A program made the translations under genes and the position numbers. Below are positions 3,826-43,867 of a DNA stretch of 64,000 nucleotides, one piece after another. The DNA is from Bugula neritina (Eukaryota > Animalia > Bryozoa): assembly GCA_964035545.1 (NCBI GenBank), contig OZ037772.1:7858889-7922888 (forward strand), read 5' to 3'. The first letter of the stretch is position 1. Each line of letters opens with the position of its first letter. The notes under the pieces were generated by a model that ran no database searches, had not been told where the DNA came from, and was given only the letters and a program-made list of their open reading frames with translations.

Positions 3826-6800
3826 TCACGGAGTTACGAGACTTGCATACATGTCTCCTTCATCAACTTTGATTTTTCCCATGGTTACTGGAAATGAACT
3901 ATAGACTGGATCAGGTATTGGGGCTGGCTGAGAGGGTATCTCTGGCTCAGCCGGCTGCTCAGGTAGCTAAGATAATCATAAATGATGTTAACAGATAGTA
4001 AAGTTAAGTCACAGTTTTTTTAATGAATAAATCTAACTGCTAACTTTTTTGATTGTACAAAACAAAATTTATTTTGGGGTTCTTTCCATTTCAATGAATA
4101 AAAATTCAACTACTCAAGAAACAATAAGTTGACATAAGTTTGTTTTTTGTTAAAGCAAACTGAAAGTTTTCATTGAATAATTACTAATATATTGTATCTA
4201 TTTGTCTGAAACCAATAAACCTAGCATGTAGCTTTGCTTGGATAAATCTTTTTTAGTAACTTGTTTGTGTATTGTAGCTTTTAGTCTAGTAATTTTTTTT
4301 ATTATCTTCAATTAAAATACTTAAGATTTTTGGGAGTTTTGCAAATAAAATATAATGTTTAGAAGAAAAGCTTTACACTGTTATTACCAATTATAACCAA
4401 ATTCTATTCAGCTTTTAAGCCTAGGGCCACAAGGTGCGTATTTTCGCATGGAAAATTGAAATCACAAGTAGCAACGGTGTCCACTGTAGCGTCAGTGATG
4501 CGTGATAAATAAAGCTTTCATTTTTAAATCGCACTCACTTTCAATAAAACGCAATTTACTGGAATGTAGCACTAAAATAAAGAAGTTGGGCTCGCTGAAT
4601 AACTATCAGCCAATTAGGTGAATGCAGAGCGACAAGTGCGAAGGTTTTCTCAACGCTCACAGTGGACACCTTTGCTACTTGTGATTTCAATTTTCGCATG
4701 CGAAAATACGCACAGTGTGGCCCTAGGCTTAATAAGCTATATTGGCAACCAGTTTGCATTTAGTTGCTGCAAGATGTTTTATAGACCCCGTTGAAATGTT
4801 GATTATAATGTTTTAAACAACTTTATTGGTTCAATTCATTTTGCTTCTAAGCAATAAAAAGATTGCAATAGGTTTATCTATGCAGAAAAATAAACTTGCT
4901 AGCGTGTGACGCCAGCTAGGCTTCATTAATATTAATTAGCTGCTATAAAATTGCATTAAATTACTATAAAGTTTAATTTAATTTGAAACAAATGACAAAT
5001 TAGTTTGAAAAATTGGAAACTATGCTATGTTAAAGGGTATATAGATGTTGTCTACATAATGTTATTGTTTCAAAATTAGCATACAAACTAAATCAACTAC
5101 CAATATCTTATTCAGATTCAAAACTGTGAAAGTGCTTACCGTGTTTGATTTGCTCATTTTTGGTGCAGAGTTGGTTTTCTTCTTGCTGCTGCGTTTGCTA
5201 TGCTCTTAAAAAAAACAAAATTGTTGCCATTAAAAAATTTTTGCAAGATATTTACTCACTTTTCTCAACTGCTAGAGAACATAGAGTTAAAAAGGTAAAA
5301 CAATAATAGCATGTTGCTATTTGTGATTGCATATAAAGCTCAAATTGAATTCTTCAATTAAAATTTGAAATAATTTTTAAAAATACCAGTTGAGTTGAAA
5401 TTGCAACAAAGTAGCTTGTTGCAATTGAATAAAGGAAAGTAATTGGCCCATGTTATTGGTTTACTGATTTTTAACAACTTGCAAAAAAAGATAAAAGTTA
5501 AACTCAAACTGAGGAAATTGATTTATTAGTTGATTACTTTTTTTACCACAGAAAGTTTACTATGAGTGATTGAGTGACATTTTGCCATCTCCAAGATTTT
5601 TTTTGTAGTAGAAATAACCTTTGAATAAATATAAATCTGCCAAGTAATCTTTAAGGAAACTATTAGGCTGTGCAGTATAAGCGTGTGGAATACTAAAATA
5701 ACCCAGAATTAAAACAACTAACAAGTTTAAATATACAGACATCAAAAGAAGCATGCTATTGATTCTAGTATTAAAAAAATATATATGTGCTTTAAATAAA
5801 ACAATCGATGAAAATTTTTTTACTGTTCATCAATGAAGTTTGATCAATCAACTTGTCTTTATAGGTTTTATATGATGGCATGTACTATGTGTTTGGTGAT
5901 TTTTATACCTGTGCACATCAATGTAATACTGTTTTTTAACTGCTAAATTACAACACTGCATCAATTAAATATTTTTAAACAATATTGACAAATATGCTCT
6001 ATTGACTAATAACACATGAGGTAGCAAAATATTTAAAAGCTAAAGATATTGTGTTAACGTTAACCTAACTTTTCGTTTTTCTGCACAATTTCACTTACTT
6101 GATCCTTGTAAAAAGTTTTTATCTAAAGCCTTTCAAATTTCATGCATTCATAGGTTTAGATTAGGCATGTTATTACAAAGTATTGATTTAATAAGTTCAT
6201 CAATTAGAATTTTTATATGTTATAATAAAGGTTAGCAACATACTTGACTTTTCCTCGGCTATTGGAGTAATTGCTCCAATGGATTCCTACAAAATTTGCA
6301 TAATTTTTTAATTATTACATAACAGATATTTTGTTTATAATAAAACTTAGCCAGTTTATAGTAGTTATCTCAGTGAGAAACCCCTGATGAAACAGTTTTC
6401 GTTAAATCGGGCTACGGACATGTTCAAATGATATACAGGAGCAATTGTGACTAGCTGATTTTCCTAACATCACCAATGGCCTTTGTCGAGGTTCGAACCC
6501 ACGACTTCGTGTTCACAAAGCAAACGATTTAACCTCTAAACCATGGCTGCTCCCTATTTTGTGTATAATACTGTGTATAAATAAGCTTGTTGAACAAGTT
6601 TAAATTCAACACTAATCCATTTTGCAATTGATTTAATACAAAAAAAAAACGTACCTGTATACCAGCCTGCCAGTGTGGTGTAATAATTTTTGGCTGTTCC
6701 ACTTTAATTGGCACTAGTTTTTCCGGCTCCTCGTAGTCTAAATATAAATTGGTAAAGATTTCATAATACCCAAAAGATTTCTAAAGTTTAAGAATTAGAC

Positions 6801-9679
6801 ATAATTTGTTCAAAGAGTCTCAAAAAAATAAGCTTGAGTTTGTATACATTGTCATTGAAAACTTTTACTAAGCAAACTTTCAAGGTAAGAAAGCAACTTG
6901 CTTTGATCATTTTCAAATGGAACCATTTTTCCTGCATGTTTTTTCTGGCATTACAGGTAGCTTTTAATCAATATAAAGACTAGAAATATTTGCTTTTTTA
7001 AACCATGTACTAATTTTTAGGCCTCTGGCTTTCTAAATGAACAAACCTAAAGAAGTTGGCATCTCTTAAAAACAGATTAAATGTTGTAAGAATCAGTTAG
7101 CGGCTTTGGGGTGCTGCCAAAATTTTATATACGGAGTCATCTCTGATGAGTTTGACTAACACACAATGTTACTGTTTCTCCAGTATTAAGTGTTGCAGAC
7201 AATAAATTCCACTACTTACTCTGTGTGCTACTTTGTCTCAAAGGTACAAATATTGCAGCTAATAATACCAACACAATTACTCCGCTCGCTGCAATAATGC
7301 CCATGTGTTCAGCTGAAATCAGTCTTTTATAGGTTGTAGTTATTACAGGTGCATCGGTGGTAGTAGTAAGTCCTGTTGATTAACACAATCATTTACTTGT
7401 TTATACATGGAAAGTTTAAAGAACATGTCAAGCAGTTTTAAGTTTGACTGTAGTTTCTATGATGTAATAGTCAAGACACTAGCTTGCATGATGCAGGTGT
7501 CCGGTTCAAATTTTGTCTTTGGTACAAATATCTTACCACCTATTTGACTTGCAGTGATACATAAATACTCTAAACAATTTAGGAGACCAGCAAATCCTAA
7601 GAGCTACAGCAGTAGAAAGAGATCCAGACAAAATCTCTATGGTTGTCATATGTTGAAATTACCCAACCCCCCCCCCCCATGAGGCAAGGGTTAGTACGCA
7701 AAGTTTTAAATTAGAGTTGATGACATGTAACATCAATTAAAAGTAATTATTTTACAAAAATATGAATAATGTTTTTTGTCAGAAATTAGTGTTCTCCAAT
7801 TTTAGAAAACATTCATAACTTATATAATAAAAACACTTTTACAGGCAAAAAAATTATATATACAAAGTTCATCAGATTTAAAACTGTGTGTGCAACGCTA
7901 AAATATTTATTCCGTCTAAATTGTCAACGTCTAAAACCTCACCTGAATATTGAAGAGAGTAAACTGAATAATCCCCAATGATGTAGATTTTCGAAGATTC
8001 CTTGGATACGACAAAATTTCTTGGAAGTTGCAATTTGCAAGTCTCAATTGGACCACTTTGGGCCATGGCATCATTTATCTGAGGGACGCATATAGATGAC
8101 ACAGAAACACTTTCTAAGTCAATCAACCGTAGGACATGGTTGGTGTGATCAGCAAGTAGAAGAGTGTTGTCATCTAAAAAGTGTAAGTACCTTGGTTCTC
8201 GTATACTTGAAGTCTCTATTGAACCATCATTATGACCAAAGCCGGAAAGAATTTTTTCGGGTGCACTTTTCCATGTGGAAGATAAACGAATAACACTGGA
8301 GTTTTGGCTAAAGTACAGGTATGAGCCAAGTGGGTCAAAGGTCAAGCCATATATTTTTTTGTCTAAGAAGTTTACTGTTCGGACGTACCAGGTTGGGGTG
8401 ACTTTTAAAAGACATCTGACAGTTCTTCTTTCGACTTCGTAAAAGTACACTTTACTACTCTCTGCTAATGATACAGCCATGCCAAAAGGATAGGCAACAC
8501 CTGCGTATGCAAATTTGCCGTCGACTACAGAGCGGCCCAAACAGTTTCCTGTAAGATCAGTGGTATAGTTATTTTCTCTATTTAGAGTTCTGAAACACCC
8601 ATTATCCTGATCGGAGATCCATATTTGTTTATTACTAATGGGGCTCGTAGCAATTCCATTGACATAGCCAAATCTTGAAATCTTCTGATCACCATTAACA
8701 TACCCCGCCAAACTTTCATCTCCGCCTATCTGATTTAAGTTTATAAAGTCACTGGTAGTATAAATGGCATACCCAAGAACTAATAAAAAGTTTCCTTTTA
8801 CATAGTCATCTGTAACTATGTAGCGGAAATCCGGACCATTATTATCAAGTTCTAACAAAACTGTTATTTCTTCAAATTTCATGCTAAAAAGTATAAAAGT
8901 ATTTCAGTTATACAATTATTTCACAACATTCCCCAATCTAAATTAGCTAAATAAATAGGAAAAACAAGAGAAATCAAGCAAAATTAAAAAAAAATTTTGA
9001 TTATTCAAGTGTATTTATTGATGTTTTACTAGTTTTGGGCAAAAGCCCATATTCATTAGCGGCTAAATTGTGAAAAATAGCTAAAAATTAAAAATTTCAA
9101 GGATGTACTAAATTAGGTAAAATGACCTTGATGCTAAAATACAAAAAATAAATACAATGATTGAATTAAACTTGATACTTAGGTAAGACCAACATAGTTC
9201 AGCAAATTATTATAATGTCACATAATGACCAAATTTACTAACATGCATACATACAAGTTTCCAATGTGTGACAATTTACCTGTCGGTTTGATTTTTGTAC
9301 AAAGCAGCCCCATAAGTTGAATAGAAGCTTAATTTTATCTAAAACATAAGTAACGCCATATTTATATTTTCATATTTCAAGTTTGCGGTGTATCGATATA
9401 ACATTTTTTGGTGAAAATAAAGTTCAATATCTTGGTGCATCATATACTCAAAATAGTCTATGTCGTTATACCACCGCATTTATGGTAGTTTTTTGAAATA
9501 TTACAGTTTAACTAGCCTAGCTCACTTTAAGCATGTCCTGATATGAATCTCTTTCCATCCAGTATAACATAAATCAAAAAGATATGATAGCTAAAATATT
9601 GAGACTTTTCAAAATGAAATATCAGTGTTCATATACTTACGCACGAGAAAACAACCAATAGGCACGTTTTGAATTTCAT
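3826..9679 (-). CDS. R2: NHL-like propeller type I membrane receptor with a bipartite Tyr-motif tail
   Basis: Exons 9641-9679 (MKFKTCLLVVFSC), 9280-9338, 7943-8883 (941 bp propeller), 7220-7372 (stalk + TM GIIAASGVIVLVLLAAIFVPL), 6655-6737 (NYEEP...), 6244-6286, 5140-5204, 3826-3966 (...DPVYSSFPVTMGKIKVDEGDMYASLVTP*). All GT-AG and in frame. Confidence 0.85.
4419..4728. mobile_element. MITE family A, copy 1 (R2 last intron)
   Basis: About 70-bp terminal inverted repeats starting GCCTAGGGCCACA, in a TTAA/TAA context; near-identical copy at 42480-42823; no coding capacity. Confidence 0.9.
6352..6554 (-). mobile_element. tRNA-derived SINE
   Basis: Minus strand starts GGGAGCAGCCATGGTTTAGAGG (A box) ... 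GGTTCGAACC (B box). The body is shared with copies at 11551-11740, 42829-43035 and a fragment at 12224-12290. Confidence 0.75.
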
Positions 9680-10333
9680 TTCCGATTCGCATAATACTTC
9701 AATTAAAAAAAATATTTATAAACAACACACAGTTGTAAATTTGAGAATTTCAAACATGCAAAATATTGCATAGTTGTTCTCAGTTTAAAGTTTTTAATTT
9801 AACATCCGCAAAGCACAAAGTTGTTTTAATTATCAACACAATTTTAATGAACTTTTAGTTATCGATTTTATTGGATGATCACATAAGGATTTAATTTGCT
9901 TTTCTGTTCCGCATTTGAAAATATTTTAGGTAGAATAAAAAAGTTTTTAACTTGACAAATTCGAATTGAAATTATTAATAATCTTGAGCTATACTATAAA
10001 ATTAACTTAGTTTTGACTTGTTTTCTTTATTAGTTGAGGTCGAGTGGCAGAACTTTATTATTTTGGGAGTTGTGCACTGCATGGCTGGAAAAATGATTAA
10101 CTTAAATAAATATCTTTATTATATATTGTTAATAGTTGTACAATGAACTTTATTATATGTCAGTTAGCTCTGACGTTTAGCTTTTACATCGCAGGCCACA
10201 CGATGTCTGAATCCACTAACTAGTTCTAATATGAAGCATCTGGTATCGACATAATATAACACTACATTGCTCATTTTTAAAAAGTTGTAAGACAGGAACT
10301 TAATATTATTTTAAATGAGCGTTTTTCTTGCAA

Positions 10334-10673
10334 CAGGGCTGTCCCACAGGCGGCCCCAGGAGCAGATGTGGTGTCAAACCTACATTTTTTGGCCCTCAAA
10401 GGCAAAGAACTAATATTATTTCTTACACGTACTGCACATAAATTAAAGCAAAACACCAGCTTTTAAGTGTCTTACTTATGCAAGAGCTAAAAAACATGCA
10501 GGCTGCATTAGCTATTGGAAATTTATTGTGTGATGATTCATAAAAACTTGGAATAAAATAATTTGAAAATTACTGACGCTGTGGCTTAGCACAAGCTAAA
10601 CTTCACAATGTGGCCCTTGTCACCAAATATTATTTTTCAGTGGCCTTCGATCTAAAAAGGTTGGACAGTTCTG
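10334..10673. mobile_element. Old hAT-like non-autonomous element
   Basis: Imperfect TIRs CAGGGCTGTCCCAC / GTTGGACAGTTCTG with internal GCGGCCC/GTGGCCC motifs typical of hAT MITEs; no clear TSD. Confidence 0.5.
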
Positions 10674-11368
10674 TGTAAAAACATGCATTCTGTGCCTGTA
10701 TTCTGTTAACTATACCTGCTATCATTGTTTAGCTTTGCATATTTGCTATTTTATATTTGCGCACAATCAACTATATTAAGTTTACAGTGTCTGTCATAAT
10801 CATTTGTAATTATTCATTGTTATCTAATAATTTCGTGTGCACACATATTAAGATGTGAAAAAAATTAAAACATTTATTGTTCAAATGAGATGAAACTTTG
10901 GTTTATGCTCTATTACGTTAGTGCTATGTGCACAAAAGTACAAGTATTGAATTGAATAGATTATGAAAAAATGTTTTGTGCCATGCAGAATGTGACCAAT
11001 ATACAAATTTTGTCTGTTCATATTGTGAGGGGGAAATACAAATAAATCGATACAATAAATACATTTTTGATTTGATATTTTTTTAGATTCTCAATCAATT
11101 TAGGGTAATTTTTAAAAAAATGTACAACATCAATTTTATGACAAAGTTTAATTATATAATCTGTTTATTAAGTTTAAGTTTTGATTACAAATTAAAAAAT
11201 AGTTAAACATTAGATTCCAAATCTTTAATTGTTTCATATTAATTGCAATTTTAATTAGTATTGCCAATAAACAGAATTTAGAAAAGAATATTTCAAAACG
11301 GCTTCATATATAGATGTCAAAATTAATTAGATTAGGTTATGATTAAGTCTTATCAAGATTTCTCAAGT

Positions 11369-16320
<4,952 letters not shown>

Positions 16321-17740
16321 TGCTATATCAATATTTTAACTAGAAATATTAATTTTTGAAAACTTGCTAATCAAACAATAAGGTTAAAACATTGATAATT
16401 TTATTTTGGTAGAATGTTTTGCATTCTGTCAAATTATTAAAAAATTCATTGTTGTTTTTTTGCCTCCTTTTTTTCAAATAAAAAGATGTGTATGTAATAA
16501 AAAACTAAAACAATTTGAATTTTCACTTAGTCCACTTTTAAGGTGTTAAGTTTAAATATTGATTTCAATATTTGCAAGTGTTGAAATACTCGAAGTTGAC
16601 TCAGAAAGTGTTTCCTTCAGTAGTACCCTAATTGCAGGTATAGTTAAACAGTGGCTGCAATAAAATCTACTTAGTTTTCACCTGTGTTCTGATTATTTGG
16701 CTTTATAAGTATCTTTTGATAAACAAAACTCATGATTGCACAACTAAAAACGTTTTGTTTGCAGTGCTTTGGTTGTTTTAATACAGATTTGCTGCTATAT
16801 ATGGAATTTTAGAGAAAAGTCTGTTTAAGATGGCATTAAAAAATAAGTTACATTCAAAATTCTAGAGAGACTTAGAAGCTGAAAGCAAAATCTAATGCTT
16901 CAAAAGCTCAACAAATAGTCCTTTCTCTTAAAACAATAGGCTTAGGAACATATAGAAAATAAAAATTCTACAATAATATAAATGAAAAACCTAAAAAAAA
17001 ACAAATGAAAGCTAGATCATATACTCTTTGAAAAACAGGCAGAGGACTAAGTTTCTTTTTGGGGTTTACCCTGAATGCAAACATTCAAATTTTTTCAAAG
17101 CATCATGGTTATACAATCATTCAATGTTATAAGCAATCTAAATGTATATAGAGCAAAATCAAACAAACCTATTTAAAGTAGTATCAGCAGGAAAATATTT
17201 CATTGCAGACCAACAGAACTATGTGAAGATCAGGCTTTCAATAATGATTCGATTAGTCACAGAATACTGGTTTGATTTAAATGATGGCAAGTTGAATCAG
17301 AAACTATGCAAGTTGTAACAGATTTCACACTAATCTTCCAAATGCAAATCATTATATACCTTTGTCATTTGAGAATTGTTTTTGATTAGATATAACTATA
17401 GGGTAAAATTTTTCAAACAGTTAATGACTTTTTATGACCAAATGGTTTCCAATTATCCTCAAGCTGTCAATGGACTACAACAATATAAGATTTATATATT
17501 TTCAGTTTTATTTTAAACTTGGCAGATTACATATAGTTTAGATATTGCTTTTTATAAATGATTTCATGAGTAAAAACTATTTTGAAAGTAATATGTGAGA
17601 ATATGTCATCAAAAACTAAAATAGCATAATTTATAAATTTGGCAATATGTATTTTGTAGGGGTTTCCCAAATTATTATGTCGGGCTTTACCCACGGAATC
17701 ATGTTGAAAATTTCCAAGTAACGATTTAGGGTTTTCCCAA

Positions 17741-22926
<5,186 letters not shown>

Positions 22927-24706
22927 TGTCAAATTAATTGAATATATAACTTAAAACCTCTTCTTTTTTCTAAAACATAACTAGTAAAACAATCAAATTT
23001 CAGCTTCAAAAATTTTATTCATGTAAAATATTCCACAATGCAACTGTTATATTTTCGTGTGATGGTCGCATATAGCACTTGACAAGATTTTACATAATTT
23101 GCAATAGTTTATATTAAAGATTTATCATTGTGTTATATTTACTAAGTAGAATCACTAAAAGTATAAATAGTAATAATAACCCAGCGCAATTCAGCAATTA
23201 GCAGTTTTTCAAGAACCACACAAAAATATAATTTTTTCTTAGATCGTACTGTTAAGAAGTGAACCAATATCCCTTAGTTTCTAGGCAGCAGAAAGAATGT
23301 ACTATAGATACTCCTGTAAAATTAGGAAAATAATATGCATGCTCAATATCTGAATAAACTATCCCAGTAAGTTATATATGTGGTAATACCTGAGGGCACA
23401 TACAGCCATGCATGTATTATGACCCACCACTCCAGCAGGATGTAAACACTACTATGTATTGACTCTTTCTTATACCACTGAACCTTAGTTCTATTGACAT
23501 AGGAAACATGTTAAAGAAGTACACAATTTAATGCTAATTTGCTGTATAAGCAGTTAAGTGTTTTAGCTTGCTCTGGAACACATCAGCCAAACTGAGAGCT
23601 GCTAGATACCTGGAATAGAATGGTATTAGCGAGACTCACAACTGGCGGAATACGAAAAAGTGCATAGTCTAACAGTCGAAAGTTGCACAATTCTTACTGA
23701 CGATGACATATACGTGTTTGAATCATAGTGGCGTTACTATGTGAAACTATTTACCAGTGAGTCGGTTGGGGGTGGGTTAGAGCACCCCCTCCTCAATTTG
23801 CTAAATTTTCAAGCAAAATTACCTTTTCTTTCCCAGCTTGTGAACTGTTTACACCTAGTTCAATCCATTGATTAAAATTACAGAAAAATACATTTTTTTT
23901 GCTGTCAGGCTTAATAAATGATTGAATATTTTGATCATTTGATTGTTAGTTCACATGAAGCTTGCATGACCTAAACAAACGCTCATCTTCATAGGAAACT
24001 TAGTAGGTACTTTGAGTTATAGAATACATGTAGCAGTTAGATAAACATATTACATGACATGAAAAACAGCCAACACTACTAACTAAGTTTTTTTATGTAA
24101 ATACTATGCTTCCATAGTTGTCAATCGATTAAAATTATTTCTTTATAAAAATTATCAAAGAGAATCAGACTGCATAGAACTTACTTTTAGGCAGTTATAG
24201 TAATCAAAACTCCCAAGTAATGCAAATATTTGAGCTAAGGGGTTTTTATTGTAAAAAAAAATATTCTGATGCAGTTTTCCAATCTAGTTCAATTTATATT
24301 TCACATTCAAATTAAATATTATAGGGTTCAATTTAATGAAAGAGTTGTTCAATAAAACATATAATTAAATTAAATATTATCACCAAATTATAACCAAACT
24401 ATTAATAATTTGTTGATATAAAAAATTGTGAGTATGTAAATTACAATTATACGACATTGGTTGTATATTTTTATTTTAAATTTATTAGATAAAATAACTT
24501 TCAAATATTACATCAACTTCATAAAATGCATGATCAACAGCCACTTTTGAAAATAAGAAGAAAATGCTGTACAACAAAGCAATCAAAGTAAAGTAGCAGA
24601 AGTTGTGTATTTGATAAAAGTCGTGTATAGAAAATCTTTGTCACAACTTCCATAAACACTTGCCTCATAGTCTTTTACATGTAGTTCTGGAAATTACATA
24701 ACATTT

Positions 24707-30302
<5,596 letters not shown>

Positions 30303-31917
30303 AGCCAACGAAATAAAAAGCCTTAATTACTCACAAAACAGTTTTTTTCAAAGCCTAATCAATAAAATAAACTGTAATTTTAAGAATGATAGCCATGTGA
30401 GTTATTTTGCATCTTCAAGATGTAATAAATAAAAAGATTTTATTTTCTTAGCTTATTTTATTGAATTAAAAAAAAATTTGAGAATATTGATAGTAATTTA
30501 CAGAATTCAGAAAAAAGTGCACTCTTGGAAATAAATTAATTTTAGTTCTAAGTTGGTGGTTTTGTTAGAAATTGAGCTAGAAATTGAGTATATGTATTGT
30601 TTCTACTAGAAATAAATAGGGCCAATTAGTATTTGTCAAATGTAGAATCTCTTCAGACAATACAAAAGACTTTGGGCAAGAGTAGCCATGGTCAGAAAAA
30701 TGCGAAGCTGTGTGCAACTAAATTTCTTAATTTGCGGCCAAATGCAAAACAACAAAAAAAAAGAATAAATTAACGAGATATAAACATTTTTTTTAAATGT
30801 AGGCTACCAAAATTTTATAATTTAAGTTTTTAAAAAAATAAATTAGGAAACTATTAATTTTTAGTGGTTGGTAGACTTTTCATACAAAAAATTAGACAAA
30901 GAATGTATATATGTGTATTCAACAGCTGCAGTGAGATATACCAGTGACTAGAGTAAAAAGAAGGAAAACTATATTACCTCAAAGTAAAGGATAGAAAATT
31001 GAAAAAAGCTCAATGATAAAAAACACATTATCAGCAACAATCATCAAAAAATTGCTACTACTGAGCTGAGAGACGGCTGTGTGTATTGCTATATGTTAGT
31101 AAACTCAATAATCCAAAGTGCACAAGGGTTGAAAAAAATTCATTCCTAAACTGCGAACTTTTATATAATCTATTTGGATATTTTATTGAATGAAATGTCT
31201 TTAGGTAATGCAAAAGGCGTAAGACATATGCCATTCATTCAAAGGAATATTTGACTGTATATTAATTTACGAAAAATGCTTACATAGGAAACCTGAAAAT
31301 ACCCAAGCTCATTATAAGACTGACAGAGACACATTCAAGACAGCCACAGGAAACATATCTTTCGTAGTTAAATATTCAGCTACTGTATGATCAGCTCTGG
31401 AAAGTTGTCGATAACCAGATATACAATGTCACATGTGCAGCTTGGTATAAAGCTTTTAAAATTCGACAAGCACTATAGTTTTTTCTCAAAAAATCACAAA
31501 GTAGCAATCCACATCATATTACTAAAAGATAATCACAAAAGATTGGCTGCTTGTTATGTGAAGACAATTTGAGCATTATTTTGATAGAAATCCAAGCTTC
31601 AAGATATGTTTCAAAGTTCAGTCGGATAAATATTATATTTTTGAGAAAAACAAATTGTGACACTGTGATTGAAAAACTCAAATATAATATATTAAAAAGC
31701 TTTAGGTTTAGTATAAGCATATGTTTTCTATTCATTTTTAAGGCTTTTTAATTTAAACAATCACCTAAACCCTTAGGTCTCAATTTCATAAATGCTTCAT
31801 CAATAAACTCAATTTGTTTAAAAAATGTAATATGACAAGTTTTCATGTTTGATGTACATCGTATGAGCTGTTTCTTTATCACGGATTTGGTGAAAACTCC
31901 AGATAAATGTTTTTTCA

Positions 31918-35784
<3,867 letters not shown>

Positions 35785-36734
35785 AGCCAAGAAAATAAAA
35801 ATTCCAAACTCACAAAATTATTATATTTTCTGTTTATAAAAGTAAGTTACGTTGTAAAAAAAAATTGTTACTTGAAGAATGCTACCTAGCTATGTGAGAT
35901 ATTTTACACTTTTAAAAGTTAATAAAATAAAAATATTTTGTTCTTTGATTTAATATTGAAATGAGATTTAGCAAATAACAATGAGTTTAATTTAGAGGTC
36001 TACAAACACAAATTGAATGAATCTGTTATTTTAGCTTTTGCTAAAAATTCCATTAGAAATTGAGAATAGATGTTGCTTTTATAGTGCTTGAAAATTAGTG
36101 TTGTAGACACAATCAAAACAGCTATTAATAATTTTTTTTAAGTTGGATATTCAGCTAAAGAAAGTAATATTGCTAAATATACTTCATAGATTTTGAACTA
36201 AAACTTCAAGAATGATGATATTAAGCCCTCAAAAGTTTGTTTACTTTTAGATGAGATGTGGCAACTTGATGTATAAAACTTATGAATAATAAAATCAACA
36301 GAACTGTGTAGGTTTATGTGCACAATAAAACAGTTTTTCTCAGAAAAAAACGAAATAGCCCTGTATCATACACATACAAAAAATTAGTCATAAAACTGCT
36401 TGTGATTTAGAAATAAGTTGCACATAATATTAATGCAAATAAAGCATGTGAGAAATGTTGACAGAGTCCAGTTGAATGAATTGTATATTTTCAAAAAAAT
36501 AACCTTTACATGCAAATTAGTTGTTACTAAGAGTCTCAAAGCTTTAATAAAAAAGCTGTAATTTAAACACATTTTTGTGTTCTTCATTCACTCTCAAAAT
36601 CTCTCAGTTTAACCAGTCATCTAAAATTACCGTCTCATTTTAGAAAAAAGTTATCAATGAACAAGATTTAACAAAAATAAGAGAAACGTGTCAATTTTTT
36701 ATATTTGATGGGTATTACGTCATCCGTTTCCTGG

Positions 36735-39700
36735 TCACTGATAAGGCAAAAGACTTTCATATACTCTTGCTTTTTCAGCATTCATTTGTTTTGACTTTTG
36801 AAGAAACATAGCATATGCCACAGCAGGTGTTGGGCTAGCCCGAGAGCTTTTCTTCTTCTCAGAAGCCGATGAAGGAAGCTAAATAGAAAGATTGTCAACA
36901 TGTCTAATTTTCACTGAAAAATATGATTACTATAAATGTGTAAAGTAATTATCACTGCTTATCATATTGATTTGCACAGTTAACTATAATGTTTATTTAA
37001 CATAACTAATAATTTTTAAATAAGTAATTTGACTTTAATCAGCACACCTTGAATACTTTGATTTTTTAAAAAATGATTAGGTTCTTTTATAAATATTGCT
37101 GCCTAAAAATTTCAATAATTTCATCTTTTAGCAATTTCCTTTATTTTCTTTATATCTTAAGGCTAATTATAGTAAAAAACTATTTTTTTATTCCTGTTTT
37201 AATTGGAATTAGGTGTAGATATCTTGTATTTTGTCAACTTTATTTTATTGACTATACAAAAGCAAAACCTTAGACCATGGCTGTTTCCTTTTTTGACACA
37301 CTTATATATTAAAGCCATCAAAAAATTTTATTTTCTAAACCATAGCAAATACTTACACTAATTGAAGCTCTAATCTTTGATGACGACGATATTCTCTCCT
37401 TTATTTTCCCCCTGTCACTTTTACTGCGCTCTAAAAAACAAAAGTGTGACTATTAAACTCACAAAAAATTTTAAAGTTTTTTTTCAATTTTTTTGAATGT
37501 TAGTCAGGTTGTAGCATTGAATGCTACTCTGAGCAGTCGGTAAAGGTTGTTACTCAAATTTTTGATGTCAGTTTCATTAAGCCAATAAGTATTTTTAGCA
37601 ACTGTTTCTATCACAACTGAGTGAATTACAGAGTACTTATTTTAGTCTTAAAAATAGCGCTTTTACCACCAAAAGTAATTTACCAAAAAAAAATTATTGA
37701 CATACTTGCTTGTTGCTCTTTTATTAATCTTTGGACTTCCTACAAAATTTACATTTTACAAAATTAAAGTGTATTCATAAAATGTAGATTCTTACAAACA
37801 ATTTAAGACTTTAACTTATCTTGTTATTTATTTAGCTGCAACTTCCATCACAACTCTGGGTCTATAATAACCAATCAAACTATAATTTATATAGTTGGCT
37901 GAGTTCTACTATTATTTATATATTTTTGCTAATTTTTTTTTTTTGGTCAAAGTCAACTTTAGTACCTTTAGATAGAGTTTATAATTTGAATAAGTGTGTT
38001 AGCATTTTATTGCTGATTCTTAGAAATATTTTGGTGAGAACATTTATATAAACTTCTGCTAAGCATTATTAGAAAAATCTGCTTTATCAAATTTTACTTT
38101 TAACTGGACGTTGTCACCAGCTTTTAACAAGAACAAGACACATTTTTTCTAAAATTTTATGATAAAAAGTTTGTAAAGTAAGTTTGATATTTGTATAGAA
38201 TAGAATATCAAAGTTTTAACATTTCAGTAAATGCTTACTGTCTTTGAAGTTTTTGTCTTGGCGGCTGATGTTTTCTGTTTAACCTTTGTACTACTATGCT
38301 GCTTAGGTTCTGTAAAAATAAAAAGTTTGTAAAGTAAGTTTGATATTTGTATAGAATAGAATATCAAAGTTTTAACATTTCAGTAAATGCTTACTGTCTT
38401 TGAAGTTTTTGTCTTGGCGGCTGATGTTTTCTGTTTAACCTTTGTACTACTATGCTGCTTAGGTTCTGTAAAAATTGAATTGTGGTCATTAAAAGTACAA
38501 AACAAAAATCAATAAATTCTATCAATAAGGGGGGTAAACTGGCAGCTTGTAAGATAATAAAGAAATTTTTCAAGTCACTAATTTCAGTTGAGTACATTTT
38601 TTTGTACCCAAGAAAATTACAAACGTTTTTACAAAACTAATAATTACTCTGAATGAGAAAATGTTCAACAAATAATTAAAATTTTGACAGAAGAAACATA
38701 TTTGAAGAATTATTGTAGCTTCTTATTACAGAAAACACAATAGAAAAAAATTACATCATTTTTATATAGCAGCTCGTCCTGTACATGCAAAACTATTATA
38801 TCAAAATAATGTTTTATTTAAAAACCAATAAATAATTTTTGTTATATTGTAGCACAAGAGCAACTATGATTTGTTGCTTTTTCTAACAAATTATTAAACA
38901 ATATGTTAATAATGTAAGATATAGATTAGTTTTGTTTGACTTGATGTACATAAGTTAACAACCTACTTATTATTTTCTCTGGTATTGAGCTCATTGCTCC
39001 TCTGGAATCCTAAAATATTCAAATTTTATGAAATGAAATTTTAACAAATTCTAAATCTATTCACTAATAGCTTAGGAAGTTTTCTTATATAGCATGTAGT
39101 ACGCTATAATATTTATTAAAAATAGATCACAACATAAAAAAATAAATCAGTCACCTAATTTATTGAAATAATTTTTTTTAAGTCTCTTATACTCGTTTTA
39201 ATAACTTATCAACTGACTTATCAAGCAATAGCTTGTACAATATTTACCTTATTTATGGCACTAGAATAATTTCTTAGGATATAAATAAAAGGCACCTCAG
39301 TTTCTGGTTAGTTGTCAAAAAATTACAAAGCAGCATTCAAATTATTTTCAAAAATAAATTAGCCCAACAGCTGCGTGTCTAAAGTAAAAAGATTGTTAAG
39401 TCATCAGAACAAAATTTTGTACAAATATTCAATTGACATGTAAGAGAACACTTTTTTAAAACTCTTGTAAATTCACTACAATTGGCTAAGAATTAAATGC
39501 ATGACTCACCAAATATTTGTTTATAAAATTGTAAAGACTTTTAGCTTGCTAGCAAACCTAAATAGGCTATACTTGATGGCCAGTTTTAAAAAGTCTTGCT
39601 TGCTAAACTACATTTTTAATAGGCCTAAATTTGAAGAAAGTTTCTACTACTTTTGCATTAAAATTAAAATAAATTAAAAGAACATACGGTATAACTAGCT

Positions 39701-42700
39701 GGCAGTTCAGGTGTTCCCACATTTGACAGTCTTGCTTCAAAGCTCAGTGCTTGTGCTATTTCTTTACCTAATTAAAATTTAAATAATTTATTTATACAAA
39801 AGCCATAAAAAGCAGCAAGTTCTCTATAACTTACAAAACGTTTGTGAATGCCCATAAGGCACACTGTTCAAAGTTAGCTATTGACGTTTTTTATTAATGT
39901 TGCCAAATAATTTAGATAAATAGATATTCTCTGCTATGCATTCAGCAGTTTCATTAGTGTGTCTTGAGTTCGCTTTCAACTCCATAGCTATTCTGTTCTC
40001 TAACTTGACAATTCTTAAAAAACCTGATATGACCACAACAATTTTATACATTGGCTCAATCTTACTTAAAAAAATATTGTTGGTAAGTGTTGAATTTTGC
40101 TATACTCACGATTTTTCTTGTTGTATATCACAAATATGATTACGGCAACTAGCAAAACCAATACATTGATGATGATTCCTGCGACAAATCCGTTGCCTTT
40201 GCTTTTCTCGGATGTGCCGGAAACATTATATATTTCAGCAGTTGTAGAAACTATTTGTGGTGTAGTGGTGTCTGTATTTGATCTGGTGATAGTTGATCTA
40301 GTGCTAGTTAATCTAGTGGTAATTGGTTTAGTGGTAGTTATTTTAATTGTAGTTGTTTTCTTGGTAGTTGTTTTCTTGGTAGTAGTTGGTGTAGTCGTAG
40401 TTGATTTCGTACTAATCGATTTAGTGGTAGTAGTTGTCAACTTAGTGGTTGGCCTCAAGTCTAATAAAATGAACACATTTTATGAAAAACATGCATTTTA
40501 CAAATAAAACCAAAACACCTGTTGGGGTAATAAAGTATTGAGATAGAAAGGCTTGTTTTCTACGGGTTGTAATCTATGTCACAAAACTAAAGCAACTTAC
40601 AAAAATTATGCACATCAAAAACTTATGTGAAATGCCCCTTACATTATTCAGACTGAAGACCTGGTCACACACTTGTGAAAATTACATAAAATTGTCTATT
40701 TCCCATAAAAAAAACAAAACATTTAATTAAACTTGAGCAAATTCATACAAAAATGTGTTCGCTGGGTGTACACACCAAAGATAATGGCCTAAAGACCTCA
40801 ATTAGCATTTTTTGACTAGTGAACTGAATTTTAGCAACATTTGTTTTACTTTTCAACCTGAATGATTGCTAAAAATAATGATAAATGAAGTTCAATAACA
40901 GAGGTATCTGTTTACAATCTGTTTTGTCTGACGAACATTGCAGTAATTTTGTGGGTTGAATGAAATTCAGTGCTGAACATATCTCTTTGTAAGAGAGAGC
41001 AAAAGGCAGGGTATTCTTCAGTGATAGCAATCTTTATTGTAGAGTAGCAGAGTGGTTTAAAACAGGCGAGCTCCAGTGGTAGACTGACTACACTGGAAGC
41101 TCGCTTGCTTTTATATACATGAGACAAAAGAATATATAAACAAAAGGATTTTATGTTGTCCGAAAATTGATTTGTCCGAAAACCGATTTACCGCATTTCG
41201 GCATTTTGGGTGTCCGAAATACCGATTTCAGTGCAATTTCATTATGTTGAAAGCTTCAACAACAATCACAATACTTAAGCATTAGAAATTTACCTCAATT
41301 AGTGATAAGTAAAGCATTTAAAACAATACAAAACCAATAATTACAATACGCGCACAGTTACTAGAACTTTCCAAAACAATAGGGGATGAAAATCCATTAC
41401 AACGTAAGGCTGATCAGTTCACAATGTCAAATCATGCAACTTTCATGTTTTTATGAGTGTGTGGCCATGCATGCCTTTAAAGGGTTAAGCTAAAGCAACT
41501 CACCATTATATAAGATCTCTGCGGTTGCATAATCTTGAAGAAGATAGATCTTTGATGAGTATTTAGATCTCACAATCTGTCTTGGCAACTGCAATTTGCA
41601 ATATCTAATAAGGTGACCTGTGAGTTGAGCATTAGTTTTTTGTTTAGCGCATAAAGAAGATATGGTAGAGTTAATCAGGTCCACCAATCGTAGGAGATGG
41701 TTTTTGTAATCTGCGATGAGGAAGGTATCATTGTCAAGAAAGAAAATTGATCTCGGTTCTCTAACTCTTGCACTACTCAATACACCATCGTTGTGACCGT
41801 AACCAGAAATTATAATCTGTGGTGAACTTCTCCAGGTTGTAGATGTTCGTAGAATGCTGTGATTAGTGCTAAAATAAAGGTTTGCACTAACGGGATCAAA
41901 GTTTAGAGCGTAAATCGTTTCGCCAAGATAGTAAACAGTACGCATGTACCAGGTTGAGCCAATTTGAAGAAGGCATCTTACAGTTCCGTCACCATTTTCA
42001 TAAAAGTAAATTTTGCGTTTATCTGATGATGATACAGCCATGCCGACTGGAAATGCAGTGCCCGCATACTCAAATTCACCGTCTTTTATATCTGTTTGAT
42101 TACATTCTCCTGTCAGTGCCCTGCTGGTGCTAGTGACTCTATTAACGGCTCTGATGCAACTATTATCTCGATCAGAGACCCATATGTAATTATTGCTAAC
42201 AGGACTTGTCACTATTCCATTGACATAGCCAAACCTTGCACTATATCCCCAACCTTCTTTGTAGCCCGGAAGCGTCTCGTTTCCATGATAAATCGCTACT
42301 GTCTTAAAGTCTTCGGTAGTAGCAATAGAGTAGCCATATACTAGCAAATAGTTTCCTGTTTTGTAGTCATCTGCCACCATGTAGCGGAATTCAGGACCAG
42401 ATGAGTTTAGTGTTGCCAAGTGTCTCACTGCCGTAAACTGTATGCTGAAATAATTTACAGAAACTATGCATATATTTAAGCCTAGGGCCACACTGTGCGT
42501 AATTTCGCATGCGAAAATTGAAACCACAAGTAGCAAAGGTGTCCACTGTAGCGTCAGTGATGCGTGATAAATAAAGCTTTCATTTTTAAATCGCACTCGC
42601 TTTCAATAAAACGCAATTTACTGAAATGTGGCACTAAAAAAAAGAAATTGGGCTCACTGAATAACTACCAGCCAATTAGGTGACGACGACAGAGACAATT

Positions 42701-43867
42701 CATACTTGCGTTGAGAATGCTGAGCAACAAGTGCGAATGTTTTCTCAACGCGCACAGTGGACACCTTTGCTACTTGTAATTTCAATTTTTGCATGCGAAA
42801 ATACGCACAGTGTGGCCCTAGGCTAACTGGGAGCAGCTGTGGTCTAGGGGTTAGATCAGCCACTTGGTAAACACGTAGTAATGAGTTCAAGCTTGGACAA
42901 AGACTATTGGTAATGATAGAAAGAGCATTCAGTAAAAATTGTTCCTGTGTGTCATCTGAATCAGTACATATTTAGCTCGAGTTATAAGAATTTTTTTTAT
43001 CACATGTTTTTTCTCAGAGATAGTGACTATAAACTTGTAAATTTTCAAACTCAATATTATCATTATAAAAATAATTTATATTACAGTAATGTCTCTCTCT
43101 CACTATTAATGCTAAAATAAATTGCAGTAGCAGTAGAATGAGTAGTTGACATTGTTAGATATAAAAAGTTCATAATAATGTCACATATAAACAACTATTC
43201 ACAGTGACTATGTATACACTTTCATTACAAATAAACGCAGGTTGAGAGATGTGTGTAATATAAAGACTCACGTGTCTGTGTGTGCTTTTAAGATATGAAC
43301 TCCACAGGATAAATACCAAGGCAGCTCTACCTAAAACATGGTTATCCGAAGATTGATTTCTTGTTATTGTTAAAGTAATATAATATATTTCGATTTTATA
43401 CTTTCTAACACTCCTCTTTCAGTGATTCATATTAGTTTTGCATTATGCTTACTGCTATAGAAGATTAGCAACAAGGTAAACCATAAAAAGTCATAATTTT
43501 TCATTGATCAGATATAACACAAAAGGCATATATATTGTAGTATTTTTAAATGGGATGTAGGATATTTCAGTTAGTATTTTTGTTGCTGTTGTCAGTTTAT
43601 TGCTTCTAACAGTTGATAAAACAAACAAAAAAGTCTTAAGTTAGGGAACACAAATTAGTACAACAAAAAAGAAGCAAAAGGGCTTAAAGCTAGCTTAGCC
43701 AATTTTTGGCTATATAGCATAGCTTTAGTACAAATTTCATGATATTTGTTCAATATTGAAATAAGTGGTATGTCAGCTAACTTAATTATATTTTAGTTAT
43801 GCACTAGTGTCGCTAGCATACTTACACACATGAAAATCATCAGGGTATAATATATTCTGAATTCCAT
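36735..43867 (-). CDS. R7: NHL-like propeller receptor with a long mucin stalk, duplicated tail exons and a bipartite Tyr motif
   Basis: Exons 43826-43867 (MEFRIYYTLMIFMC), 43272-43330, 41504-42444 (941 bp), 40110-40460 (Thr/Lys mucin + TM FVAGIIINVLVLLVAVIIFVIY), 39688-39767, 38967-39009, 38395-38465 and/or 38239-38309, 37706-37739, 37357-37430, 36735-36878 (...PAVAYAMFLQKSKQMNAEKARVYESLLPYQ*). Confidence 0.82.
38162..38473. repeat. Exact 156-bp tandem duplication containing an R7 tail exon
   Basis: 38162-38317 and 38318-38473 are identical as read; each holds a 71-bp exon with intact AG/GT. Confidence 0.93.
42480..42823. mobile_element. MITE family A, copy 2 (R7 intron 2)
   Basis: Same long TIRs as 4419-4728, flanked by TAA on both sides, with about 34 bp of extra internal sequence. 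Confidence 0.9.
42829..43035 (+). mobile_element. tRNA-derived SINE (same family), next to MITE A
   Basis: GGGAGCAGCTGTGGTCTAGGGG...GAGTTCAAGC...GAGATAGTGACTATAAACTT. Confidence 0.65.

Follow-up and report, generated by a model that had tools for sequence, protein, structure and literature searches.

A conserved block of 26 amino acids with two tyrosine motifs was identified at the end of the terminal coding exons of receptor-like genes in the bryozoan Bugula neritina. The genes belong to a tandem array on contig C8 of the B. neritina assembly (216.0 Mb; published genome: PMC11480708), from which a window of 64,000 nucleotides (7,858,889-7,922,888) was analyzed. The block reads D-x-V-Y-[SA]-[ST]-F-x4-G-x-[ILM]-K-[VA]-D-E-x-G-hydrophobic-Y-A-S-L-[VL] and is followed by 1-8, usually 3-4, further residues and the stop codon. 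As judged from comparisons of its copies, it is under purifying constraint. The explanation preferred here, to which we give about an even chance of being right, is that the block represents a non-canonical, long-spaced phosphotyrosine docking module for an SH2 protein, in the first place a Shark-type kinase, or else SHP-2 by bridging of both sites or a partner of site 2 alone.

The following copies were found in the window:

3826..3966 (coding 3829-3966), minus strand: R2 terminal coding exon, 46 codons plus TGA, ending with DPVYSSFPVTMGKIKVDEGDMYASLVTP before the stop; VYSSF-x14-YASL; acceptor ttatcttag, phase 0.

11369..11515 (coding 11372-11515), minus strand: R3 terminal coding exon, 48 codons plus TGA; LYYSGI-x14-YASL.

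17741..17971 (coding 17744-17971), minus strand: R4 terminal coding exon, 76 codons plus TAA, ending with DSVFSTFHELKEGELKVDEGGLYASLVTKP before the stop; VFSTF-x15-YASL.

36735..36878 (coding 36738-36878), minus strand: R7 terminal coding exon, 47 codons plus TGA, ending with AVAYAMFLQKSKQMNAEKARVYESLLPYQ before the stop; AYAMF-x14-YESL.

31830..32029, minus strand: degenerate R7-type tail exon of R6, in which an 8-nt insertion and a 1-nt deletion put site 1 (LAYATF) out of frame.

Translations and DNA confirmed the motifs of R2, R3 and R7 as originally predicted and placed them on the minus strand; nothing was found in the plus-strand frames at the coordinates of the four tails. The replacement of Tyr by Phe at site 1 of R4, with a spacer of 15 residues, was likewise verified by translation. 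The N-terminal part of this exon is Pro-rich and of low complexity. In R2, R3 and R7, only 3-4 residues lie between Y[A/E]SL and the stop codon, and R7 is the most divergent copy of the window. Each tail exon begins in phase 0 directly behind a polypyrimidine tract and an AG acceptor. At the DNA level, the pattern Yxx[F/I]-x14-Y[A/E]SL matched three times in the window (in R2 at 3839-3903) compared to 0.00 matches expected, and none of 100 dinucleotide shuffles gave a match. The remnant in R6 contains two stops ahead of the remains of site 2, so that R6 as read ends without the module. In R5 of the window no copy was detected, and R8 ends with a different, ITIM-like (immunoreceptor tyrosine-based inhibitory motif-like) sequence behind a nonsense codon.

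A profile built from the four tails and searched against the whole 216 Mb genome revealed nine places, all within C8:7.77-7.90 Mb, and no match outside this region. Besides R2 (the best match of this search), R3, R4 and R7, they comprise R1, whose tail lies 3 kb before the window and ends with EQVYSSFPVTTGVMKVDEADVYASLL before the stop, two copies in G8 (ending with DPVYATFPVAGGEMQVDESGFYATLVSKK), G10 (ending with DSVYASFSTKAGELKVDETGLYASLVSKP) and one copy at locus L009. A tenth tail exon, a tandem copy about 250 bp from the first one at L009, was found by inspection. In 9 of the 10 copies the frame is open and the acceptor intact. The module is thus carried by about 10 genes among at least 65 NHL-propeller receptor genes. 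When 1.84 billion proteins were searched with a profile of the tail alignment, no relative beyond Bugula was found, although this library rarely contains exon-sized open reading frames (ORFs) of other bryozoans. The two true matches, P0012 and P0013, are both Bugula ORFs. A protein-pattern scan of the JGI metagenomes also gave no relative, and the DNA pattern gave a single, unrelated match there (L014).

Some hits were discarded. The matches of P0014 to P0017 are due to repeats or to chance; P0014 (GCA_026230105.1, another eukaryote) is a secreted six-repeat protein (DYANFSV..GNVKVEDRYEES) with a signal peptide, a 13-residue spacer, no YxxL and no transmembrane (TM) helix. A generic screen for two YxxPhi motifs near ORF ends was dropped, as it yielded hundreds of chance matches in AT-rich DNA. 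Two loci with duplicated tail exons deserve mention. In G8, the two copies lie 3.4 kb apart and are 99.9% identical over 845 bp (L005/L006, C8:7779273-7785836), while the two exons at L009 (C8:7839907-7843011) are diverged and one of them has no good acceptor. These duplicates could be alternative 3' exons or products of assembly or duplication.

The comparison of the tails disclosed which positions are kept. At site 2, the tyrosine (Y2), the Leu at +3 and a hydrophobic residue at -1 are present in 10 of 10 tails, Ala at +1 in nine and Ser at +2 in eight. At site 1, the tyrosine (Y1) and the Phe at +3 occur in nine tails each, Asp at -3 in seven. Conservation extends into the linker, where Gly, a hydrophobic residue (10/10), Lys, Val/Ala, Asp, Glu and Gly are kept; the D-E pair occupies positions -5/-4 of site 2 in most copies. 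Eight tails have a spacer of 14 residues, R4 and its orthologue one of 15; the two tyrosines are 18 (R4: 19) residues apart. Mean pairwise identity among paralogues amounts to 43% in the core, compared to 13% in the 15 residues upstream of it. The original prediction, according to which the spacing is preserved within an otherwise poorly conserved tail, has therefore to be divided: it holds for the spacing and for the N-terminal part of the exon, but not for the linker and the core. At the DNA level, paralogues can be aligned inside the core only, their introns and 3' flanks or untranslated regions being beyond alignment. Since DNA similarity is limited to the core, the block is an island of conservation and not a result of recent gene conversion. 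The tails of G8 and G10 have 57-72% of the core in common with the R genes, even though in the propellers the identity to these genes is only 22-27%.

Orthologues of two tails were available from a second Bugula lineage. In an older assembly (GCA_010799875.2), a contig (locus L010) can be matched collinearly to positions 24,860-12,049 of the window at 76-83% nucleotide identity. Between the propellers of both lineages, synonymous divergence (dS) is 0.47-0.52 and the ratio of nonsynonymous to synonymous divergence (dN/dS) 0.13-0.19. Because of this dS the second lineage is regarded as deeply diverged. B. neritina has been described as a complex of cryptic species (B. neritina genome note). The comparison of tails covers R4 and G10. 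In the R4 orthologue, which ends with DAVYSTFHNLKEVELKVYDGGLYASLLAKP before the stop, both YxxF and YASL are kept, site 1 having a Tyr (AVYSTF) instead of the Phe found in the window. For G10, the orthologue (P0012) differs in 2 of 29 core residues (7%) compared to 5 of 13 residues upstream (38%), with the flanking DNA being about 17% diverged. The conservation in orthologues on which the original prediction depended was thus found for both sites in the two genes compared. The Pro-rich repeat of the R4 terminal exon contains a frameshift in the older assembly (L010:7020-7360). It is probably an assembly error, since three other assemblies (JGI and two Logan; L028-L030) contain the R4 tail exon (P0013) as one intact ORF of 85 residues.

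The tails are most likely the last coding exons of paralogous single-pass receptors composed of a propeller, a Thr-rich stalk, a TM helix and a short tail. Each ectodomain of the array comprises about 320 residues encoded by a single exon. It gave weak Pfam matches to NHL repeats, and a protein-language-model search placed it nearest to NHL propellers; the best protein match is a B. neritina hypothetical protein. When the genome was searched with the R2 propeller, 65 or more propeller exons came to light on C8 (7.58-8.03 Mb and 8.71-8.73 Mb), together with a few elsewhere. Downstream of the propeller exon follow a stalk and TM exon and then the tail exons. Basic residues stand after every TM helix of the window genes, as would suit a cytoplasmic tail. 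By the logic of the sequence, the receptors would be of type I, with the module at the C-terminal end of their cytoplasmic tail.

The exons between propeller and tail are as follows (a slash denotes the exon boundary):

7220..7379, minus strand: R2 stalk (Thr-rich) and TM exon, GIIAASGVIVLVLLAAIFVPLRQSSTQ; donor A/gtaagt, phase 1.

14245..14350, minus strand: R3 TM exon (3' part); donor T/gtaagt, phase 1.

20885..21040, minus strand: R4 stalk and TM exon; donor A/gtgagt, phase 1.

40110..40479, minus strand: R7 Thr-rich stalk and TM exon; donor C/gtgagt, phase 1.

6655..6737, minus strand: predicted middle cytoplasmic exon of R2 (83 nt, phase 1 to 0), (N)YEEPEKLVPIKVEQPKIITPHWQAGIQ; acceptor tttatatttag, donor CAG/gtacgt.

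13711..13790, minus strand: predicted middle cytoplasmic exon of R3 (80 nt, phase 1 to 0); the frame is also open in the other Bugula assembly (L010:11947-12090).

20429..20562, minus strand: predicted middle cytoplasmic exon of R4 in its long form (134 nt, phase 1 to 0), ending with NKGVRPSDMETLEWKAGSH; acceptor uncertain.

The tail frame appears to be reachable by splicing because the phase-1 donors of the TM exons, the lengths of the middle exons of R2, R3 and R4 (2 mod 3, with phase-0 donors) and the phase-0 acceptors of the tails agree. These data are consistent with a joining of TM, middle and tail exons in the predicted frame. The middle exon of R4 is a gap-free block common to both lineages, with one 3-nt indel and the same donor /gtatgt. 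In three of the four window tails (R2, R3 and R7), the AG of the acceptor sits in an in-frame TAG.

Some further features of these exons were recorded. The middle exon contains a second conserved cytoplasmic peptide, [KN]K-x-[VM]-[RK]-PSDM-x-T-[LVI]-EW-[KRQ]-AG, which is common to R4 (window 20429-20480), L9 (L018, C8:7841000-7846000) and G8 (L020, C8:7778000-7784400) and of which a remnant, HWQAG, exists in R2. The R2 middle exon opens with (N)YEEP, a further tyrosine motif; at the same position R4 has DFED and its orthologue NVKD. Due to the DFED and the Phe at site 1, R4 of the window would possess neither the membrane-proximal nor the site 1 tyrosine. Candidate first exons with a signal-peptide-like MKF-hydrophobic start were detected for R2 (window 9641-9679, MKFKTCLLVVFSC/gtaagt) and R3 (16279-16320, /gtaagt).

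Regarding possible partners, exon-level Pfam matches and direct reading identified a gene with the architecture of Shark (SH2, three ankyrin-repeat exons, SH2, Tyr kinase) at C7:14.371-14.378 Mb (L015, C7:14371000-14378500) and an orthologue of SHP-2/Corkscrew (SH2, SH2, and a protein tyrosine phosphatase (PTP) domain) at C3:23.740-23.748 Mb (L016, C3:23740000-23748500). The SH2 domains of both genes are split by introns, and several further SH2-kinase genes exist in the genome. The tandem-SH2 proteins which had been proposed as readers of the paired motif are thus encoded, and their presence makes a docking of SH2 domains possible. ITIM pairs bound by SHP-2 typically have their tyrosines 22-30 residues apart, which is more than the 18-19 residues seen here. 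The closest known arrangement is that of Draper, whose ITAM (immunoreceptor tyrosine-based activation motif) binds Shark and whose tyrosines (Y934 and Y949) lie at a distance of 15 residues from each other, beyond the canonical spacing (PMC6219719). Like Draper/MEGF10, the genes studied here encode predicted non-immunoglobulin single-pass invertebrate receptors with two long-spaced cytoplasmic YxxPhi motifs, and a Shark counterpart exists in the genome. By contrast, the spacer is three to four residues longer here (x14-15 compared to x11, the tyrosines being 18-19 residues apart), site 1 ends with Phe instead of Ile/Leu, the ectodomain is an NHL propeller instead of EMI/EGF domains, and NPxY is missing.

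Similarities to other systems are of a more general kind. As with ITAM, ITIM and hemITAM (half-ITAM) motifs, short tyrosine motifs occur here in tails of surface receptors that are clustered and duplicate rapidly, and site 2 with its acidic upstream residues and YxxL resembles an ITAM half-site or a hemITAM. The core-2 motif ([A/D]VYxxV) of Botryllus FcoR is found only in pairs, 29-33 residues apart (PMC12582321). Like Botryllus FcoR and Hydractinia Alr with its ITAM/ITIM tails, the Bugula genes form a lineage-specific, tandem-clustered family with variable tails in a colonial marine invertebrate, and in some of these tails two tyrosine motifs stand close to the C-terminus at a constant distance from each other. 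Unlike FcoR and Alr, which belong to the immunoglobulin superfamily, they have an NHL propeller, another spacing and consensus, and a conserved linker.

A function of the block in tyrosine signaling would start with a ligand-driven clustering of the receptors, after which a Src-family kinase would phosphorylate one or both tyrosines. Src- and Syk-family kinases prefer a hydrophobic residue at -1 and an acidic upstream context, and both tyrosines of the block are preceded by a hydrophobic -1 residue and by upstream acidic residues. The phosphorylated block would then recruit an SH2 protein. The favored partner would be a tandem-SH2 protein bridging both sites, with a Shark-type SH2-ankyrin-SH2 kinase as the first candidate by analogy with the long-spaced ITAM of Draper and SHP-2 as the second. 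In a variant of this mechanism, only site 2 (acidic-x-x-YASL, hemITAM-like) would be an essential phosphosite. Expression, membrane topology, phosphorylation and SH2 binding of the receptors are all presumed in this mechanism, and the caution of the original prediction that the signal may be activating or inhibitory still holds.

Several observations weigh against this docking mechanism. According to the published definitions (ITAM, Yxx[LI]-x6-9-Yxx[LI]; ITIM, [ILVS]xYxx[IVL]; hemITAM, [DE][DE][DE]xYxxL; PMC9546547, PMC12582321), none of the 10 tails is an ITAM, even if a spacer of x6-12 is allowed. Site 2 provides a YxxL in all 10 tails, but site 1 ends with Phe in nine of them and with Ile only in R3. 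The ITIM consensus is matched by LYYSGI of R3, as had been proposed, and by no other site in the remaining nine tails, the residue at -2 of site 2 never being S/I/V/L and site 1 having Phe at +3. Neither the immunoreceptor tyrosine-based switch motif (ITSM, T-x-Y-x-x-[V/I]) nor a strict hemITAM occurs in any of the 10 tails; 2-3 acidic residues within -5 to -2 of site 2 are present in seven, e.g. DEGD-M-YASL. The module is therefore outside the ITAM, ITIM, ITSM and hemITAM classes as defined, but may still work like a motif of the ITAM/ITIM class. The idea of an ITIM/ITAM-like module survives insofar as the block is lineage-restricted, constrained and centered on tyrosines with a spacing longer than that of a canonical ITAM; what failed are the canonical definitions, except for the ITIM at site 1 of R3. 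A conserved linker is unusual for ITAM or ITIM pairs. As docking of SH2 domains alone needs none, its conservation hints at another kind of interface. The dN/dS value of the core among paralogues is about 0.5 at a dS near saturation, an overall moderate value, as the variable linker positions dilute the signal of the fixed ones. In R4, 8 of 30 core residues differ between the lineages, for which reason this copy looks relaxed, and its site 1 has the Phe mentioned above. On the transcript side, a search of sequencing runs found no RNA run with the locus and one DNA data set only, and the genome note mentions no RNA. For the middle exon of R7 there are three phase-compatible candidates, none of which could be selected. 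The donors of the candidate first exons of R2 and R3 are in phase 0, in contrast to the phase-2 acceptors (ag/C) of the propeller exons. This mismatch could reflect the lack of a small exon or the use of other donors.

The main rival explanation, which we consider unlikely, is that the two motifs are sorting signals of the YxxPhi type (Y-x-x-[L/I/V/M/F]), read in their unphosphorylated form by the mu subunits of AP-2, AP-1 or AP-3 and leading to endocytosis or lysosomal targeting. The pattern fits site 1 in nine and site 2 in all 10 tails, which again speaks against a role in SH2 docking, but the fit is weak evidence because such a pattern, also in pairs, arises almost freely by chance in AT-rich DNA. 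The distance of site 2 from the C-terminus (1-8 residues) would suit sorting, as some lysosomal membrane proteins carry YxxPhi similarly close to their end, and Phe at +3 is tolerated by mu2 while it is atypical for ITAM and ITIM. On the other hand, a single YxxPhi normally suffices for sorting, whereas two are found here at a fixed distance. Asp at -3 and Val at -1 of site 1, D-E and the hydrophobic -1 residue of site 2, and Ala-Ser at +1/+2 are not usually needed by sorting signals either, nor is the conserved linker. Two further candidates were rejected: a caspase site with cleavage between D and E of [ILM]-K-V-D-E, as P1' would be acidic and P1 is not invariant, and a PDZ ligand, as the C-termini have no consensus.

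It is also conceivable, though in our opinion quite improbable, that the whole block of 26 residues is a phosphorylation-independent docking motif for a lineage-specific partner, e.g. by beta-strand addition, with the aromatic residues acting as hydrophobic anchors. This would account for the conserved linker with its alternating hydrophobic and polar residues ([ILM]-K-[VA]-D-E) and for the tolerance of Phe at site 1 of R4. It would also agree with the second block (RPSDMxTxEWxAG) in the middle exon of R4, G8 and L9, which suggests that the tails contain several peptide motifs. However, what stays invariant at either site is precisely the Tyr and the residue at +3; the hydrophobic -1 residue and the acidic upstream context suit Src- and Syk-family kinases, and no candidate partner is known. 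That the motif is just an inherited relic, conserved without function in genes that are silent or whose tails are spliced otherwise, appears very improbable. The result of the RNA search, the broken copy in R6 and the fast evolution of the R4 core would be in line with it, as would the duplicated tail exons at L009 and in G8, because of which some tail copies must be redundant. Against a relic speak the restriction of conservation to the core with flanks beyond alignment, the low rate of core changes in the G10 pair compared to its upstream residues and flanking DNA, and the open frames and intact acceptors in 9 of the 10 copies with consistent exon phases.

Beyond the tails, some observations on the genome were made. 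Interspersed high-copy repeats occur within and upstream of R2 (window 4380-4780, 6380-6580 and 8780-9180), with a summed contig depth of 10^4 to 5x10^5 in run X1. The repeat at 4420-4760 recurs at 42,400-42,890, a segment formerly read as part of the N-terminus of the R7 propeller ORF. For the R2 introns (window 5206-7220), the DNA run X1 contains contigs identical to the assembly at a depth of about 72-76 and a second set at a depth of 55-58, which differs from the assembly by 29 mismatches and 23 gaps in 338 bp, 67 and 25 in 610 bp, and 34 and 2 in 321 bp. As the diverged contigs have a similar depth and no second copy of this stretch is present in the assembly, the sample seems to carry a second haplotype which is about 10-15% diverged in the R2 introns. 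Many small unplaced contigs (e.g. C10, C33, C66, C176, C201) show the signature of a ciliate-type genetic code, with full-length matches to Tyr or Ser/Thr kinases or PTPs that contain many in-frame TAA and TAG codons and almost no TGA, suggesting that the unplaced scaffolds include DNA of an associated ciliate. Tandem arrays of PTP-domain exons at C6:8.02-8.43 Mb and C1:3.96-4.23 Mb, with near-identical matches to PF00102 positions 36-83 and 174-231, point to lineage-specific expansions of PTP genes at both places.

Bryozoa are colonial animals that fuse with or reject their neighbors, and to our knowledge no recognition or immune receptor system of this phylum has been defined at the molecular level. 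It is a tentative and rather doubtful idea that the block is the signaling output of a bryozoan-specific, immune- or allorecognition-like complex of non-immunoglobulin receptors, encoded by 65 or more NHL-propeller genes within about 0.45 Mb and having interchangeable tails, of which the class described here would be coupled to Shark by an unusually long-spaced ITAM. If true, this would be the fourth independent receptor cluster of the ITAM/ITIM style, after the vertebrate natural killer cell and Fc receptors, Hydractinia Alr and Botryllus FF/FcoR. The module also bears on the limits of tandem-SH2 spacing, its 18 residues lying between the range of ITAMs and the typical range of SHP-2 bis-phosphotyrosine ligands. 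Its presence on a part of the large NHL-propeller cluster offers a testable handle on a possible link of these receptors to the Src/Syk/SHP pathway, including the sign of the signal.

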